This document shows positions 6,283 to 64,000 of a DNA stretch of 64,000 nt, one piece after another. The notes beneath the pieces are model-generated. The model was not told where the DNA came from and did no database searches. It saw only the letters and a list, made by a program, of their open reading frames with translations. The first letter of the stretch is position 1. Each line of letters begins with the position of its first letter. A program made the position numbers and the translations under genes. The stretch is from positions 62,001 through 126,000 of IMG/VR virus record IMGVR_UViG_3300028558_000016. One strand, written 5' to 3'.

Positions 6283-8328
6283 TTACTTCTTGAAACGCTT
6301 TGCTAACTCATCAGCTACTCCCGCCATGTAGTCATTAGAATACCCTGACATGTTCGGTTTTGCGGCATTAGCTGCTGTTTCGTTCTCGTTCAGTCTGATA
6401 AGTCCCACAGTTTTTTCCTTGTTTATCCCTGGTCTTGTAGCCCAGAAGTTGTTGATCTGGTAAGCTGTATCAAGTTTCCTTAACTTGCTCGCAGATATAA
6501 TTCCTTCTTGTTCTGCAACACTCATAGATTCCCAGATTGGTTTGTACTTTTCTGGCATCTCAGTGATGAACTTCGGTTCTGTTACGACTTTCTCTTCTAA
6601 AGCTGCATCCCATTTTTTGATGACATCAACTTCCGAGAAGTAAGCGCCGTTTTCCAACGCCTTAACGACCTTTTCTTTCTTGGTCTCGTCGAGAGTTACA
6701 AATTCTTTTCTTTTGTCTTCGTTAAGAAGCTTGTAGAAAGCGTATTTGCTCTCATTCAAATTTGAAGCTGTTTTCTGATTTTTAACAGTTTCAAGCAATG
6801 AATTTATTTTCGTGGTTAATGTTGAATAATCAACTTTAACAGTTTCTTTGTTTTCGTTTACCTCTGCTTTTGCAACTTCCGGAGTGGTAGTTTTTGGAGC
6901 ATCGATATTAACGTTCTCAGCTATATACTCCGAGTACGCTATGTTTTTCTCAATTTTTTCAGCTAAATATTCAGAATATGTAATTCCTTTATCTAAAGTT
7001 TCAGAAAGGTATTCTCCATATTCAATGCTTTGATCAACTTTTTCTGCGATATATTCGCTGTAATCAAGGCTCTTATCTAAGTTCTCAGCAAGGTATTCGC
7101 CATAAGCGATTGTTCTGTCTAAGTTCTCAGCTAAGTATTCTCCGTAGGAAATGGCTTTGTCTACGTTCTCTGCAAGATACTCTGCGTAAGAAATTCCTTT
7201 CTCAAGGTTTTCTGCTAAGTAGTTTGCGTAAGTGATACTCTTGTCTAAGTTCTCTGCAAGGTATTCTCCATAAGAGATAGACTTGTCAACGTTCTCAGCT
7301 AAGTATTCGCTGTAAGAAATAGTCTTGTCAAGATTTTCAGCAAGGTATCTCGAATATTCGATAGTCTTGTCTACGTTCTCTGCCAAGTATTCCGAGTATT
7401 GAATGTTCTTGTCTACATTTTCGGCAAGATACTTCATATACTTTTCAATCCTTTCAATTCTTTCTTCAAGAACCGTAACTGTTGAGTTAGCCTCATTTGC
7501 AGTTGCAGGATTTTTAATTTTTTCTTTTAGAGCTTCTAACTCTTTTTTGATGACCTGTGAGTATCCATTAAGATCATCCACAGTTACAAAATCTCTATTA
7601 GCCATTTCTGAGATGTTATTTTTTTCTTGTACTTCCAAAGCCTTTAAAAAAGCACCTTGGTGATTTTCATCTATTCTATATATCCTTACAGATTCAGAAT
7701 TTTCACCAATAACGTTATTTGTTACATCTTCCAATGATTCTGTAACCGTTCCGTTCTTCTTTTCGTTAAATTTCATGTTTACGCTCTCGTAGATTCTCTC
7801 GAGCTCTGCCTGTTCGAAACCAGGGCTTTCAACTAAGTCATACGTAAAGATCTTTTTAATCTGAACTTTTTTATTCTCCTTAACAACACCAGCTGCTCTC
7901 GATGAGATATGTAATGGAACTCCAGCCTTAACCAAGGCTATTGCCATTTCACCTGCAGGGTGTCCTTCAATAAGTCTTATTCTGATTTTTACATGTCTTG
8001 CTTCTTTATCATATTCTAATGCTTCTACAACGTGGGAAGCATTTTTTAGAGATGTTTCGAAGTTTGCAGGGTGATCAAGTTCTCCAAGGAGACTCTTCTT
8101 TGCAATTTTCTTTTGAAGATATTCAAGATGTGGAAGATATTCTGCCTCCTCGTAAATTCTGTGGTTATTATTCTCTTTTCCAAAAACTGCTGCTATTCCT
8201 TCAAGGATATAGCCTTTGCCACCTTCATTCTTGGATTTAACTTCTACATTGGCATCTGACATCCTTTCAAGGACAAAGACCCAATCCTTACCAAATGTTC
8301 CAAGATCGTTATTTTCGTTGTTTTTCAT
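6283..8328 (-). CDS. prohead protease (gp21-like) fused to repeat scaffold domain
   Basis: N.N.RIY, LGELDHP, ISSRAAG, TYDLVESPGF; ATG at 8328 preferred over GTG at 8385. Confidence 0.9.
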   Translation of the reverse strand: MKNNENNDLGTFGKDWVFVLERMSDANVEVKSKNEGGKGYILEGIAAVFGKENNNHRIYEEAEYLPHLEYLQKKIAKKSLLGELDHPANFETSLKNASHVVEALEYDKEARHVKIRIRLIEGHPAGEMAIALVKAGVPLHISSRAAGVVKENKKVQIKKIFTYDLVESPGFEQAELERIYESVNMKFNEKKNGTVTESLEDVTNNVIGENSESVRIYRIDENHQGAFLKALEVQEKNNISEMANRDFVTVDDLNGYSQVIKKELEALKEKIKNPATANEANSTVTVLEERIERIEKYMKYLAENVDKNIQYSEYLAENVDKTIEYSRYLAENLDKTISYSEYLAENVDKSISYGEYLAENLDKSITYANYLAENLEKGISYAEYLAENVDKAISYGEYLAENLDRTIAYGEYLAENLDKSLDYSEYIAEKVDQSIEYGEYLSETLDKGITYSEYLAEKIEKNIAYSEYIAENVNIDAPKTTTPEVAKAEVNENKETVKVDYSTLTTKINSLLETVKNQKTASNLNESKYAFYKLLNEDKRKEFVTLDETKKEKVVKALENGAYFSEVDVIKKWDAALEEKVVTEPKFITEMPEKYKPIWESMSVAEQEGIISASKLRKLDTAYQINNFWATRPGINKEKTVGLIRLNENETAANAAKPNMSGYSNDYMAGVADELAKRFKK
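6904..7449 (-). repeat. 13 tandem 42-bp (14-aa) coding repeats, consensus xIxYSEYLAENxDK
   Basis: Counted directly in the translation. Confidence 0.9.
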
Positions 8329-56551: not shown

Positions 56552-56819
56552 TACGCAACGAACTCTGATAAGAACTCAGAAAGTTCAGGACTGTCAGACT
56601 ATTAGTGACTTAGAAAAACTGTTTGATGAATTTAAAACTATTCAAGGCGCAAGCAAAGAATACAGTTCTGAGACACTCAAATTCAAATTAGAACAATTGA
56701 GATTTTTATTAAACAGCGAATTAAAATTCGATGATGTTCCATGGAACGTGATAACAAGATCACATGGCATAAGAGCCAAATGCATGGAATTATTTTACTA
56801 CGAAAAACATGGAGTTTAA
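56535..56819 (+). CDS. hypothetical protein
   Basis: Coupled ORF; ITRSHGIRAK. Confidence 0.55.
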   Translation: METLNDTQRTLIRTQKVQDCQTISDLEKLFDEFKTIQGASKEYSSETLKFKLEQLRFLLNSELKFDDVPWNVITRSHGIRAKCMELFYYEKHGV

Positions 56820-56833
56820 GCACTACACAAACT

Positions 56834-57673
56834 ATGTCCATAAAAGATATTTTTAAAGGAATTTTTGATAAAGCATTTCAGACTCTTGGAGACCGAATGA
56901 AAGGTTACGAGAAAGCAGATAAGAGAAAGCTTGAACCAAAAACTCCGGTTATTATAAGGCTCGACGGAAGAGCTTTTCACACATATACAAGAGGGTTTAA
57001 GAAACCTTATGACGAAGTCATTGGTAACGCTATGAAATACACCACAATAAAATTGTGCGAGGAAGTTCAGAACGTCAGGCTTGCGTATTCACAATCGGAC
57101 GAGATAACATTATTCTTGGCTGATTATGGAAATAAAAACACTCAGCAATGGTTCAACGGAGAAGTTGACAAGATCGTTTCATTGTCTGCTTCTATTGCAA
57201 CGTATTACTTCAATGAGTATATGGAAATACATCATTGGAGCAAATACCCAGAGAAGAAAAAACCTGCCACATTTGATTCAAGGTCATTCAACATTCCAAG
57301 ACATGAGGTCACCAATAATTTTATTTGGAGACAACAAGATGGAATAAGAAATTCCATATCGGGGTTGGCACAAGCTAATTATTCAGATAAAGAACTTCAT
57401 CGTAAAAGCACAGCTCAAATGTTATCCATGTTAGAAGATAAAAAAGTACATTGGGATGAGATGAGCACTTACAAGAAAAGAGGTTTTTGCGTAACTAAAG
57501 AATATTTCGTGCTTGAAGCTTCTGAACTCAATCTTCCTGAAAATGTGAAGGTTACAGAACCCATAATGAGATCTAAATGGGTTGTGGATGAGGACGTACC
57601 AATCTTTTCAGAAGATAAATCCTATATAGAGGTTTTGGTAACATTAGGAGAACTTGCCAATAAATATGAATAA
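56834..57673 (+). CDS. tRNA-His guanylyltransferase / Thg1-like 3'-5' polymerase
   Basis: RLDGRAFH, QSDEI, FDSR, WRQQD..RNS. Confidence 0.9.
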   Translation: MSIKDIFKGIFDKAFQTLGDRMKGYEKADKRKLEPKTPVIIRLDGRAFHTYTRGFKKPYDEVIGNAMKYTTIKLCEEVQNVRLAYSQSDEITLFLADYGNKNTQQWFNGEVDKIVSLSASIATYYFNEYMEIHHWSKYPEKKKPATFDSRSFNIPRHEVTNNFIWRQQDGIRNSISGLAQANYSDKELHRKSTAQMLSMLEDKKVHWDEMSTYKKRGFCVTKEYFVLEASELNLPENVKVTEPIMRSKWVVDEDVPIFSEDKSYIEVLVTLGELANKYE

Positions 57674-61615: not shown

Positions 61616-61664
61616 AATATTTCATCAACTTTAACAAACCCGAGCTAACCACTCGGGTTTTTTT
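61586..61664 (+). promoter_or_regulatory. attenuator: antiterminator (61586-99/61630-43) overlapping terminator (61636-61664)
   Basis: TTGGGTTTGTTAAA pairs with TTTAACAAACCCGA; terminator AAACCCGAG-ctaacca-CTCGGGTTT-TTTT. Confidence 0.7.
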
Positions 61665-61688: not shown

Positions 61689-61760
61689 GGTTCTGTAGTC
61701 AAAGGGTTACGATTTTTGGTTGTCAACCAAGAGGTGCGGGTTCGAGTCCCGTCAGAATCG
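61689..61760 (+). tRNA. tRNA-Asp(GTC), weak D-arm
   Basis: GGTTCTG/CAGAATC acceptor, loop TTGTCAA, T-arm GCGGG-TTCGAGT-CCCGT. Confidence 0.75.
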
Positions 61761-61762
61761 CT

Positions 61763-61842
61763 GGAGGAAACATGGGTTCGAATCCCATACGAAATGGAAA
61801 CACATTTCGTTCGTTTAGTGGCAGGACGTCTCCCCGAATTGG
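61763..61842 (+). ncRNA. circularly permuted tRNA-like element (YrlA-like Y RNA or permuted tRNA)
   Basis: Order is T-arm, closed acceptor stem, D-arm; the ends form the anticodon-stem equivalent GGAGG/TCTCC. Confidence 0.75.
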
Positions 61843-61848
61843 AAGTTT

Positions 61849-61919
61849 GGTCCGGTGGCCGAGTGGTTAGGCGGAGCTCTGCAAAAGCTCATACGGCGGT
61901 TCGAATCCGTCCCGGACCT
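61849..61919 (+). tRNA. tRNA-Cys(GCA)
   Basis: Canonical cloverleaf, loop CTGCAAA, U73. Confidence 0.95.
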
Positions 61920-62038
61920 CGTGGTGTAGAAGAGTATTGTGAAAATGGAAACCGTGCAAGGTGTAACAGTAAACAAAATGCTTCGTTCGTAAATGATTGG
62001 TCACATGAATTAATTCACTTGGCCATAACTGTAAAATT

Positions 62039-62112
62039 GGTGGCGTAGTTCAGCTGGTTAGAATGCCTGCCTGTCACGCAGGAGGTCACGGGTTCGAGTC
62101 CCGTCGTCACCG
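62039..62112 (+). tRNA. tRNA-Asp(GTC)
   Basis: Canonical cloverleaf, loop CTGTCAC, G73. Confidence 0.95.
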
Positions 62113-62129
62113 CAAATGTTCTTTGAAAT

Positions 62130-62203
62130 GGTCCTATGGTGGAATTGGTTAACACGTCAGTTTCTCAAACTGAAGATTACGGGTTCGATCCCCGTTGGGA
62201 CTA
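62130..62203 (+). tRNA. tRNA-Glu(CTC)
   Basis: Stem TCAGT/ACTGA, loop TTCTCAA. Confidence 0.9.
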
Positions 62204-62207
62204 CGAA

Positions 62208-62301
62208 TGAATTAAGCCGATAGACTGGTTAATGGCGCGTCGACAACGTCCGTGATAAGGTTTCCATGATGAAACTCATGCTGATCACGTAGGCTAATTC
62301 A
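62208..62301 (+). ncRNA. candidate structured RNA between tRNAs
   Basis: Terminal stem TGAATTA(A)GCC/GGCTAATTCA; inner CGTGAT/ATCACG and CATGA/TCATG. Confidence 0.45.
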
Positions 62302-62308
62302 CTTATTT

Positions 62309-62385
62309 GGGGCCTTAGCTCAGTTGGCCAGAGCACCTGCCTTGCACGCAGGGGGTCATCGGTTCGAATCCGATAGGCTCCACCA
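62309..62385 (+). tRNA. tRNA-Ala(TGC), CCA encoded
   Basis: G3:U70, loop CTTGCAC. Confidence 0.95.
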
Positions 62386-62677
62386 AATGATTAGTTGAAG
62401 TAGATGGAAAATCGTTCTGTTGGTAACCATTTTCCAAATTAATGTGATGATGTCTCAGACTTATATCACGAACCAACAAAGAGTGGTGAACTTAAAAATC
62501 ACCGTGAGTAAAAAAGAAGATAACGTTCTTTTGATATTTAAAAACAAGAAGTCGATGATCTACCTTGAAAAAGGTGAATCAACGAAAGTTCCGATCCCAA
62601 TGATCACAACGTGTTTTACGTTGAAGAAGTTTAGATTGAAATTATCGTTCGACTTAATGTGTGAAAAATAATTTCAC

Positions 62678-62751
62678 GCTCCTGTAGTGGAACTGGTTAA
62701 CACGTCCGCCTTTCACGCGGAAGATCGCGGGTTCGAACCCCGTCGGGAGTA
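62678..62751 (+). tRNA. tRNA-Glu(TTC)
   Basis: Stem TCCGC/GCGGA, loop CTTTCAC. Confidence 0.95.
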
Positions 62752-62756
62752 CAAAT

Positions 62757-62842
62757 GTTGCCGTATGCAAATTGGTTTAAGCGAACAGACTTTCAATCTG
62801 TGTTCCGTATGGAACGTGCGGGTTCGAACCCCGTCGGCAATA
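62757..62842 (+). tRNA. atypical class II tRNA: TTC (Glu) anticodon with long variable arm and A73
   Basis: ACAGA-CTTTCAA-TCTGT, then GTTCC-GTAT-GGAAC variable arm. Confidence 0.8.
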
Positions 62843-62928
62843 CAAAAATAAAATAATAGGAGGACCCAGGCTGTGGACGCAACAAAAATGTAATTTCTCT
62901 TTACGAACAGTTTTGCAAAGAGAACGGA

Positions 62929-63720
62929 GTGGAATTTGAAATAGTAAAATCCGTAATTCCACATGATGACACAACTCTTTTCTGCTGTTCAGGAATGCAA
63001 CAGTATAAAAGCAAGTTTAAAGATCAAAATTATAAATGCACGATTTCAAACATCCAACCGTGCATCAGATTAAATGATCTTGAAGAAATAGGAGACAGCA
63101 CTCATTTCCTATACTTCAACATGATGGGATTCTTTTCTTTCAGAGAATGGACTGTGAAAAGAACAATTGATTTTTGGATGTCGTTCATTAATAAGATTGG
63201 TCTTAAAGTGGATTATGTTACAATCCATCCAGACAAAAAAGAATGGAAAGACTTTTATATTGAATACAATGTTGAAGTAAAAGAAGATCTCGAATGCACT
63301 TGGACTGATGGAGACCTTGGAGGATACTGCACAGAATTTTATGTGAACGGTATTGAGATAGGAAACATAGTCAATTGCAATGGTGATTGCATAGATGTTG
63401 GATTTGGTTTAGAAAGACTTGACATGCTTGTCAACAATAAAACAAAAGATGAGATAAGCGTGTTGAAGGAAACCATTGAAAAGATAATTGAAAGCGGTTA
63501 TGTCCCTGGACCTAAACAGCAGGGATACATCTTGAGAAAGCTTTTGAGATTGTTATATGTGAAAGGTGGAAGTATCGATCATGAATTCTTTGTCAAGGAA
63601 AAAGAAAGACAGGAACGATTGGTAAGAAAATATTCTTTGCTAAAACAAAAGCACAAAGACAAAAGCAAAGAATGGTGGTATGGAACACATGGAATTGATT
63701 TGAATGAAATGGGGCCTTAG
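62929..63720 (+). CDS. miniature alanyl-tRNA synthetase (catalytic domain and compressed helical domain; no editing or C-Ala domain)
   Basis: TLF..SGMQQYK, QPCIR.ND...GD..H...F.M.G.FSF, IEIGNIV, IDVGFGLERL, GYILRKLLR, Y.THG. Confidence 0.85.
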   Translation: MEFEIVKSVIPHDDTTLFCCSGMQQYKSKFKDQNYKCTISNIQPCIRLNDLEEIGDSTHFLYFNMMGFFSFREWTVKRTIDFWMSFINKIGLKVDYVTIHPDKKEWKDFYIEYNVEVKEDLECTWTDGDLGGYCTEFYVNGIEIGNIVNCNGDCIDVGFGLERLDMLVNNKTKDEISVLKETIEKIIESGYVPGPKQQGYILRKLLRLLYVKGGSIDHEFFVKEKERQERLVRKYSLLKQKHKDKSKEWWYGTHGIDLNEMGP

Positions 63721-63785
63721 CTCATTTGGCTTAGAGCGCTTGCCTGGCAGGCAAGAGGTGACGGGTTCGAAACCCGTAGGCTCCA
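63711..63785 (+). tRNA. tRNA-Ala(GGC)
   Basis: G3:U70, loop CTGGCAG; overlaps the AlaRS stop codon. Confidence 0.9.
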
Positions 63786-63789
63786 CTAT

Positions 63790-63854
63790 CGGAAAGGATC
63801 ACAACATCCCGTACGAGAAAGAACGACACAACTGTTGTGAGTTGGAAAGTTCTT
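63790..63854 (+). ncRNA. candidate kissing-loop RNA
   Basis: Hairpin loops CACAAC and GTTGTG are exact complements. Confidence 0.5.
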
Positions 63855-63855
63855 C

Positions 63856-63927
63856 GGGATCATAGTATAAGGGCAAGTACGCATCCCGCTCAGGGATGAA
63901 ATGCAGGTTCGAATCCTGTTGGTTCTA
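63856..63927 (+). tRNA. atypical tRNA (nominal CTC anticodon, G33, G3:U70, A73)
   Basis: GGGATCA/TGGTTCT acceptor, CATCC-CGCTCAG-GGATG, canonical T-arm. Confidence 0.65.
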
Positions 63928-63932
63928 CAATT

Positions 63933-64000
63933 GGGGAATTGATTTGAAATTGGCTATCATGTTAGACTTGCAATCTTTCGTTACGGGTTCGAGCCCCGTA
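63933..64000 (+). tRNA. tRNA-Ala(TGC)-like, truncated by the window end, weak anticodon stem
   Basis: GGGGAAT start, loop CTTGCAA, T-arm ACGGG-TTCGAGC-CCCGT. Confidence 0.6.

Follow-up and report, generated by a model that had tools for sequence, protein, structure and literature searches.

A 64,000-nucleotide stretch of IMG/VR virus record IMGVR_UViG_3300028558_000016 (positions 62,001 to 126,000 of the record; hereafter the window) encodes a tRNA in which the glutamate anticodon UUC is combined with the long variable arm of a class II tRNA. The window belongs to a phage genome assembled as one contig of 482,156 bp (36.8% GC) from a rhizosphere metagenome, rated 100% complete by CheckV. By the textbook rule, a long variable arm occurs in bacteria only in the tRNAs for leucine, serine, tyrosine and selenocysteine, in which the arm is an identity mark. 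The long-armed molecule, here called the long tRNA-Glu, is a real tRNA gene, and its sequence features point to a functional elongator that decodes GAA and GAG and is charged with glutamate, a reading to which we assign a probability of roughly 55%.

Structure and conservation of the long tRNA-Glu

ARAGORN, run on the window, calls a tRNA-Glu(ttc) at 62757-62843, and the Rfam tRNA model (RF00005, gathering score 29 bits) matches 62757-62842 end to end with 49.8 bits (E=5e-9). A short tRNA with the same anticodon lies immediately in front of it.

62757-62842, plus strand: long-armed, class-II-shaped tRNA with anticodon UUC (ARAGORN, Rfam, homologues with compensatory pairs)
62678-62751, plus strand: the short twin, an ordinary 74-nt tRNA-Glu(UUC) (ARAGORN, Rfam)

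The long tRNA-Glu is 86 nt in size, with the canonical 7/5 geometry of acceptor and T stems. The acceptor stem, GUUGCCG/CGGCAAU (62757-62763 and 62835-62841), ends in the pair G1•U72, with U2:A71 at 2:71, and U8 and A9 are read from the sequence between it and the D arm (62766-62783). The D stem consists of three pairs, U10•G25, G11:C24 and C12:G23, with A13•A22 of unpaired type, and the D loop is AAUUGGUUUA. All positions of the anticodon stem (ACAGA/UCUGU; arm 62785-62801) are paired and the loop, CUUUCAA, presents UUC at 62792-62794. The variable region of 16 nt comprises a 5-bp stem, GUUCC/GGAAC, with the loop GUAU (62802-62815), then G62816 and U62817. The T arm (62818-62834) reads GCGGG-UUCGAAC-CCCGU, and is identical to that of the short twin. 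The discriminator is A62842 (A73); CCA is not encoded and CAAAA follows. With U8, A14, G18G19, U33 and the T loop all present, and a score above threshold, the molecule belongs in RF00005, and the variable stem-loop of at least 10 nt, the 3-bp D stem and the unpaired A13•A22 place it in class II. The short twin has G1•U72, A73, U11:A24 and a variable loop of 4 nt.

A preliminary description of this DNA had reported an 86-nt cloverleaf with a TTC loop, a perfect anticodon stem, a 5-bp variable arm and A73, set 5 nt behind a normal tRNA-Glu(TTC). Direct reading of the sequence bears out each detail; the short twin ends at 62751 and the spacer is CAAAT. We also agree that a class II shape under a glutamate anticodon is an unusual combination. 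We caution that the minimum-free-energy fold of the isolated molecule is not a cloverleaf and its z-score is just -1.5; the centroid fold shows the acceptor, anticodon, variable and T helices. Contigs of other rhizosphere DNA runs span 62733-64000 without any difference, and the gene is therefore not an assembly artefact.

Exact-pattern scans and BLAST identified ten distinct homologues, which come from IMG/VR, from JGI, from huge phages in GenBank and from a single contig of a metagenome-assembled genome (MAG). The relevant contigs, with those of more divergent relatives, are listed below.

IMG/VR contigs L002, L060, L070 = L113, L101 = L109 and L133: homologue of the long tRNA-Glu
JGI contigs L023 = L024 and L025: homologue of the long tRNA-Glu
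GenBank 642-kb huge phage LR756502 (L140) and MAG contig L136: homologue of the long tRNA-Glu
374-kb phage (L135) and a tRNA array on a Kangiellaceae chromosome (L139): more divergent long tRNA-Glu

The loop is CUUUCA(A/U) in all ten homologues, positions 32-37 (CUUUCA) being invariant. The metagenome pattern behind L023-L025 included the anticodon loop, so TTC is there partly by design; our claim of conservation rests on the anticodon-blind searches, and seven of the ten distinct close homologues were recovered with the anticodon left unspecified. Conservation of TTC in homologues was a check proposed in the preliminary description and the outcome is clear: UUC is kept in ten distinct homologues, with no leucine anticodon among them, and is neither an error nor a private mutation.

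The helices are conserved as well. In an alignment of eight sequences, 10 of the 22 predicted pairs display double compensatory changes, which support four of the five helices, the variable arm among them. The variable arms of the homologues are hairpins of 4-6 bp with unrelated stem sequences, mostly closed by tetraloops (for example GUAU, UUCG, GAAA and UUAU). Since the hairpin is constant and the stem sequences are unrelated, the arm is evidently selected as a structure. Invariant in the homologues are G1•U72, A73, U48 and the T-stem pairs G49•U65 and C50:G64; G51:C63 is flipped to C:G in a single homologue (L002), and the position of G18G19 differs between homologues. Pattern matches on L026, L134, L137 and L138 were rejected as chance matches that are not tRNAs. 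The Kangiellaceae locus (chromosome OZ246006.1, 2509-5443) is an array containing a long tRNA-Glu(UUC) with A1:U72, G73 and an encoded CCA, together with an 88-nt tRNA-Ile(UAU); long-armed tRNAs with class I anticodons are therefore not strictly limited to free phage contigs.

Isotype features of the upper half and the core

A scan with the D arm, blind to the anticodon, returned 21 tRNAs: 11 tRNA-Tyr(GUA), six long and two short tRNA-Glu(UUC), one long tRNA-Lys(UUU) and one long tRNA-Gln(UUG). No tRNA-Leu or tRNA-Ser was among these 21. The best match outside tRNA-Glu is a tRNA-Tyr, with 95% identity in the D arm and 90% in the anticodon stem. D-arm identities are 86-95% to phage tRNA-Tyr versus 62-67% to phage tRNA-Leu, values that are biased in that many of the loci were fetched by that same D arm. 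Unbiased support comes from the isotype make-up of the scan (Tyr, Glu, Lys and Gln, with Leu and Ser absent) and from BLAST against GenBank phages, where the second-best match is an annotated tRNA-Tyr of a Bacillus phage. Short 75-nt phage tRNA-Glu(UUC) genes that share this Tyr-like D arm and encode CCA are found at L075:2088-2165 and L130:3353-3430 (minus strand), and therefore this D arm exists with and without the long arm.

The upper half of the molecule is of a different type. The acceptor end and T stem (G•U/C:G/G:C) match those of tRNA-Glu in the lineage. Short phage tRNA-Glu carries G1•U72 in 17 of 22 and A73 in 20 of 22 cases, and among ten sampled cellular Bacteroidota tRNA-Glu(UUC) the same features are seen in eight and nine, respectively, with U11:A24 and the 4-nt loop kept. 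A naive-Bayes score over 1:72, 2:71, 3:70, N73, 49:65, 50:64 and 51:63, trained on 247 canonical tRNAs from the same contigs, placed glutamate first in all eight distinct long tRNA-Glu scored, by 3.4-6.6 natural-log units over leucine and at least 10 over tyrosine. By these sequence features the long tRNA-Glu is a mosaic, with the acceptor, discriminator and T half of a tRNA-Glu on a class II core (D arm, anticodon stem and variable arm) that is nearest to phage tRNA-Tyr. Glu and Tyr genes are interleaved in the tRNA arrays of these phages, which suggests a route by which such a mosaic could arise.

The Leu-type body proposed in the preliminary description, with A73 as the leucine mark, is not supported by these comparisons. 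Leucine and serine tRNAs are missing from the D-arm scan, leucine D arms are distant, the classifier prefers glutamate in every case scored, and A73 is the usual discriminator of short phage and Bacteroidota tRNA-Glu. Among the features read by GluRS, U34, U35, C36 and A37, which are the four strongest determinants for the E. coli enzyme (PMC9976931), are all present.

The molecule differs in part from each of its nearest known counterparts. It resembles bacterial tRNA-Tyr in the D arm (UAUGCAAAUUGG..AAGCG), the anticodon stem (RCAGA/UCUGU), the long arm, A73 and U35, but has UUC rather than GUA, an acceptor of G•U/Y:R/W:W rather than GGG/CCC, a Glu-type T stem and a shorter junction after the variable stem; G34, A36 and G1:C72 (with G2 and G3) are missing in all homologues. 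With canonical tRNA-Glu it shares the loop CUUUCA, the G1•U72 and A73 of Bacteroidota and phage and the Glu-type T stem, but the variable arm is 16 nt instead of 4 nt and neither U11:A24 nor U13:G22 is present. Like the spare tRNAs with which phages replace nuclease-cut host tRNAs, it lies in a phage tRNA array close to phage synthetase genes; the described phage escape tRNAs are known for differences in the anticodon loop and not in overall architecture. The allo-tRNAs and selC* tRNA-Cys (Mukai et al. 2017, PMC5389517; reviewed in PMC7609411) are likewise metagenomic, with a long variable arm and unexpected anticodons; their acceptor/T stems are 8/4 or 9/3 and their identity is tRNA-Sec/Ser-like. 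In contrast the long tRNA-Glu has the canonical 7/5 geometry, A73 and not the G73 of tRNA-Ser, and U2:A71 in place of G2:C71. The nev-tRNAs of nematodes have a variable arm and Gly CCC or Ile UAU anticodons on leucine bodies, and are leucylated in vitro (PMC3333845, PMC4300185). The class II shape, an anticodon other than Leu, Ser or Tyr, the 7/5 geometry and conservation within a lineage are common to both. However the long tRNA-Glu has a Glu-like upper half on a Tyr-like core and not a leucine or serine body under a foreign anticodon. More generally, the long-armed phage tRNAs described below have the acceptor and T half of the isotype of their anticodon, with A, G, C or U as discriminator according to isotype, span about 15 isotypes and sit beside short twins.

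Proposed charging and role in translation

Which amino acid would such a molecule carry, and to what end? We infer charging with glutamate and use in translation. The long tRNA-Glu would be co-transcribed with its neighbours in the array and excised, and CCA would be added. A GluRS of Bacteroidota type, either that of the host or the 519-residue enzyme of the phage, would then read U34-U35-C36-A37 and the G1•U72/A73 end, EF-Tu would bind by way of the Glu-type T stem, and the tRNA would decode GAA, which at 48 per 1000 codons is second only to AAA in the phage genome (GAG, 18 per 1000). Two pieces of background are compatible with this scheme. Pairs 49:65 to 51:63 of the T stem tune the affinity of EF-Tu to the esterified amino acid, and since the long tRNA-Glu and its short twin have identical T stems, the same amino acid would suit both. 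In complexes with class I synthetases the variable region of the tRNA points toward solvent, and GluRS could therefore tolerate the arm.

The purpose of the arm would be to give this isodecoder a different appearance to some tRNA-acting partner, the candidates being a host tRNA-targeting nuclease or toxin that is escaped, or a phage enzyme that prefers the long form. The arm most likely changes how a tRNA-binding partner sees the molecule, because it is conserved as a shape only and because a short twin of the same anticodon is kept alongside in many lineages.

The phage GluRS (genome 388782-390341) is bacterial-type, with 423 bits to TIGR00464. Its closest relatives in the PDB are two GluRS entries of 511 residues, at 478 bits compared to about 270 for the rest. 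In addition the contig of one homologue of the long tRNA-Glu was binned with a Bacteroidetes MAG. On these grounds the host of the phage is probably a member of the Bacteroidota, in line with a report on huge-phage GluRS (PMC7162821).

Several observations weigh against charging with glutamate. U11:A24, U13:G22••A46 and a missing residue 47 are major determinants for E. coli GluRS (PMC9976931), and the long tRNA-Glu has none of these, presenting G11:C24, A13•A22 and a 16-nt variable region instead; U11:A24 and the 4-nt loop are kept in the short twin and in cellular Bacteroidota tRNA-Glu. Elements used by LeuRS are present in A73, A15-U48 and G18G19, although A20a is replaced by U, and elements used by TyrRS in A73, U35 and the long arm, although G34, A36 and G1:C72 are absent. 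The combination of G1•U72 and A73 also occurs in all four of the phage's own leucine tRNAs. The association with a phage GluRS is loose: GluRS is encoded in two complete phage genomes that have no long tRNA-Glu by the pattern used, and one 70%-complete record has the long tRNA-Glu but no GluRS. This mixed co-occurrence was not used as support. Finally, two runs labelled RNA contain 10-20% of the sampled words, but on the window they resemble DNA or relatives and provide neither ends nor depth over the gene.

Four other explanations were considered. In the first the molecule has no role in translation: it would serve as a sponge or decoy against a tRNA-targeting nuclease or toxin of the host, or would donate its aminoacyl group to another pathway. 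The long forms of this genome are those for Lys, Glu, Gln, Asn, His, Trp and Met, and anticodon nucleases favour these same tRNAs as targets. The molecule is retained next to a normal twin that has an identical anticodon loop, and some toxins reportedly recognise a long variable loop (PMC11541572). For a decoy, however, an anticodon arm alone would suffice, yet the acceptor end, discriminator, T stem, U8, A14, G18G19 and T loop are kept as in working tRNAs. The sole tRNA-Trp that ARAGORN calls in the genome is a long one, and at least that molecule must be translated with. We regard a role outside translation as unlikely.

The preliminary description had put forward a missense tRNA, carrying leucine or serine. 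In the leucine version an anticodon-blind LeuRS would charge the molecule, and leucine would be inserted at GAA and GAG after the model of the nematode nev-tRNAs (PMC3333845). The leucine requirements established in E. coli are A73, A15-U48, G18G19 and A20a, with the anticodon not needed (PMC9976931), and of these A73, A15-U48 and G18G19 are present in the long tRNA-Glu, which also resembles the phage tRNA-Leu in its G1•U72/A73 end and in a junction of 2 nt behind the variable stem. The phage also encodes a LeuRS homologue of 487 residues, which aligns in three separate stretches to an 843-position profile and probably lacks the editing domain. Set against this are the D arm, closer to Tyr than to Leu, the missing A20a and the varying position of G18G19, pairs 2:71 and 3:70 that are Y:R and W:W where tRNA-Leu has C:G and C:G, the Glu-type T stem and the classifier score. 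Other long-armed tRNAs have C73, G73 or U73, so the class as a whole cannot be LeuRS substrates, and leucine at the second commonest codon would harm the phage's own proteins. Charging with leucine is thus improbable. The serine version fares no better, lacking G73 and G2:C71, and GAA is too common for missense without self-damage.

Missense by tyrosine, with a host or phage TyrRS acting on a core of tRNA-Tyr descent, is more doubtful still. It would account for the D arm and anticodon stem, the Bacillus phage match and the interleaving of Glu and Tyr genes; A73 and U35 are critical tyrosine determinants (PMC9976931) and the phage encodes a TyrRS. Nevertheless the tyrosine acceptor pairs G1:C72, G2:C71 and G3:C70, found in 18-20 of 22 phage tRNA-Tyr, are replaced in all homologues by G1•U72, Y2:R71 and W3:W70, and positions 34 and 36 no longer carry G and A. 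The T stem is of the Glu type, tyrosine falls at least 10 natural-log units under glutamate, the junction after the variable stem is 1-3 nt as opposed to 3-4 nt in tRNA-Tyr, and missense at the common codon GAA would damage the proteome. Lastly, a decaying, functionless product of recombination between neighbouring tRNA-Glu and tRNA-Tyr genes would explain the mosaic build and is suggested by the interleaved genes, but is barely credible when diverged phages have ten distinct homologues that retain every helix by compensatory changes, together with all universal tRNA positions, and when population reads showed no variants.

Other long-armed tRNAs and the genome surroundings

The long tRNA-Glu is not alone. 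In the phage genome ARAGORN called eight tRNAs that have a long arm but an anticodon for none of Leu, Ser and Tyr. Rfam backs six (Glu 49.8, Met 46.5, Gln 46.0, His 45.8, Trp 44.8 and Asn 38.1 bits). The long tRNA-Lys, with 28.0 bits, is just below the 29-bit threshold and its membership of the class is probable, whilst a 92-nt 'tRNA-Asn' at genome 5778-5869 had no Rfam support and was dropped. Those outside the window are, in genome coordinates:

6974-7059, minus strand: long-armed tRNA-Met
7373-7464, minus strand: long-armed tRNA-Lys
386605-386692: long-armed tRNA-Asn
387507-387591: long-armed tRNA-Gln
413915-413998: long-armed tRNA-Trp
414375-414464: long-armed tRNA-His

Most of the long-armed tRNAs adjoin a short tRNA of the same anticodon. 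Related huge-phage contigs add long forms for Asp, Cys, Ile, Thr, Val, Pro and Arg, and in loci fetched only by way of a GluRS homologue long tRNAs with class I anticodons make up 14 of 69 tRNAs. The ends differ: tRNA-His has C73 and an encoded G-1, tRNA-Trp A1:U72 and G73, tRNA-Gln U1:A72, tRNA-Thr G1:C72, C2:G71 and U73, and tRNA-Asn mostly G73. The long tRNA-Lys and its short twin have the same 3′ acceptor strand and anticodon arm. The classifier put the isotype of the anticodon first for 33 of 46 long tRNAs, compared to 142 of 247 canonical ones left out one at a time. By this measure the acceptor ends of long-armed tRNAs follow the isotype of the anticodon. Discriminators differ by isotype, leucine needing A73 and serine G73, and therefore no single class II synthetase serves all the long tRNAs.

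In this genome the long tRNA-Gln and the long tRNA-Glu have a D arm and anticodon stem in common. The long tRNA-Gln lies just upstream of the TyrRS gene, in a block that also holds tRNA-Gln(CUG), GluRS and a gene for a protein with a GatB/YqeY domain. A common GluRS route for the two would fit, although we treat this as a lead only. A plausible phage enzyme exists for six of the seven long isotypes as against four of ten short-only isotypes, numbers that are too small to count.

These data allow a broader, more tentative proposal, which we place somewhat short of an even chance. Huge phages may keep a parallel set of tRNAs in which class I amino acids are carried on a class II, long-armed frame, each charged according to its anticodon beside an ordinary twin. 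The set would be a structurally orthogonal pool, untouchable by host tRNA-directed defences or by the phage's own host shut-off, or preferred by the reduced synthetases of the phage. It would comprise at least Glu, Gln, Asn, Asp, Lys, His, Trp, Met, Ile, Thr, Val, Pro, Cys and Arg. Full-text literature searches, with subscription journals outside their coverage, found no description of phage class-II-shaped tRNAs with class I anticodons, and the class is apparently undescribed; the huge-phage paper notes only a possible charging of the phages' 'own tRNA variants' (PMC7162821).

The extension of class II architecture to many isotypes, with cognate-looking ends, departs from the textbook rule. 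If these tRNAs are correctly charged then GluRS, GlnRS or GatCAB, AsnRS, HisRS, TrpRS and MetRS can accept class II cores, phages have evolved a structurally distinct tRNA pool, and natural, ready-made orthogonal scaffolds are at hand for genetic-code engineering. If they are mischarged instead, this would be the first large natural viral system of programmed missense. A parallel set, if real, would represent a new class of tRNA and a new layer of phage translation control.

The long tRNA-Glu is part of an array on one strand, with a terminator-like hairpin (61636-61660) immediately upstream. The array runs in the order Asp, Cys, Asp, Glu, Ala, Glu, long Glu, a truncated alanyl-tRNA synthetase gene (mini-AlaRS), Ala, Glu and a weak partial tRNA.

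61689-64000, plus strand: tRNA array (ARAGORN, Rfam)
62130-62203, plus strand: short tRNA-Glu(CUC) with G1•U72 and A73 (ARAGORN, Rfam)
62860-63720, plus strand: mini-AlaRS, truncated alanyl-tRNA synthetase homologue of 286 codons, catalytic core only (Pfam, NCBIfam)
63856-63927, plus strand: second short tRNA-Glu(CUC) with G1•U72 and A73 (ARAGORN, Rfam)

The last match of the array (63933-64000, 24.4 bits, loop CUUGCAA) is partial and cut by the end of the window, and ARAGORN run on the whole genome makes no tRNA call for it. Most tRNA genes of the phage are followed by N73-CA, often CAAAT (for example 62752-62756 and 62113-62118), and a full CCA is rarely encoded, a pattern that resembles a conserved trailer or processing motif on the 3′ side.

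The mini-AlaRS gene is directly 3′ of the long tRNA-Glu and has homologues in six viral contigs. It matches Pfam tRNA-synt_2c (E=2.7e-20) and, under the curated cut-off, NCBIfam alaS (E=2.5e-21). The long tRNA-Glu has no G3•U70, and we take the gene as context only. There is no ATG, GTG or TTG between the upstream stop (TAA TAG, 62854-62859) and codon 24 (GTG, 62929). Homology begins at codon 1 nonetheless. The sequence AGGAGGANCCAGGCTGTGGACGC in this start region (window 62857-62930) is kept at the DNA level in a 67%-identical homologue (L017:8942-8970).

Across the whole genome ARAGORN finds 55 tRNA genes, which are clustered, and synthetase genes adjoin their cognate tRNAs. In addition to the enzymes already mentioned, the phage encodes an AspRS of non-discriminating type, a MetRS homologue of 468 residues, a ProRS of 385, a short HisRS of 258, a TrpRS of 243, a weak GlyRS-like protein and Thg1; the AlaRS has 286 residues and the TyrRS carries an S4 domain. 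Shortened homologues of LeuRS, ProRS, MetRS, HisRS and TrpRS lie at genome positions 321.2, 394.0, 401.4 and 414.4-415.9 kb. The Thg1 (tRNA-His guanylyltransferase) homologue is at window 56741-57673 on the plus strand. At genome 414375-414543 the long tRNA-His, with its encoded G-1 and C73, is accompanied by a short tRNA-His that encodes CCA and in which a G at -1 faces A73.

Three tRNAs carry the anticodon CUA of amber suppressors (genome 358020-358092, minus strand; 368276-368349; 374278-374351). An alternative genetic code was considered and rejected: counting TAG as a sense codon brings little extra open frame (from 390.9 to 422.6 kb in open reading frames of at least 150 residues) and table 11 was kept. 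At genome 7775-7880 (L163:2776-2881, minus strand) a 51-bit tRNA match, for which ARAGORN makes no call, has a 35-nt insertion in the anticodon loop and may be an intron-bearing tRNA.
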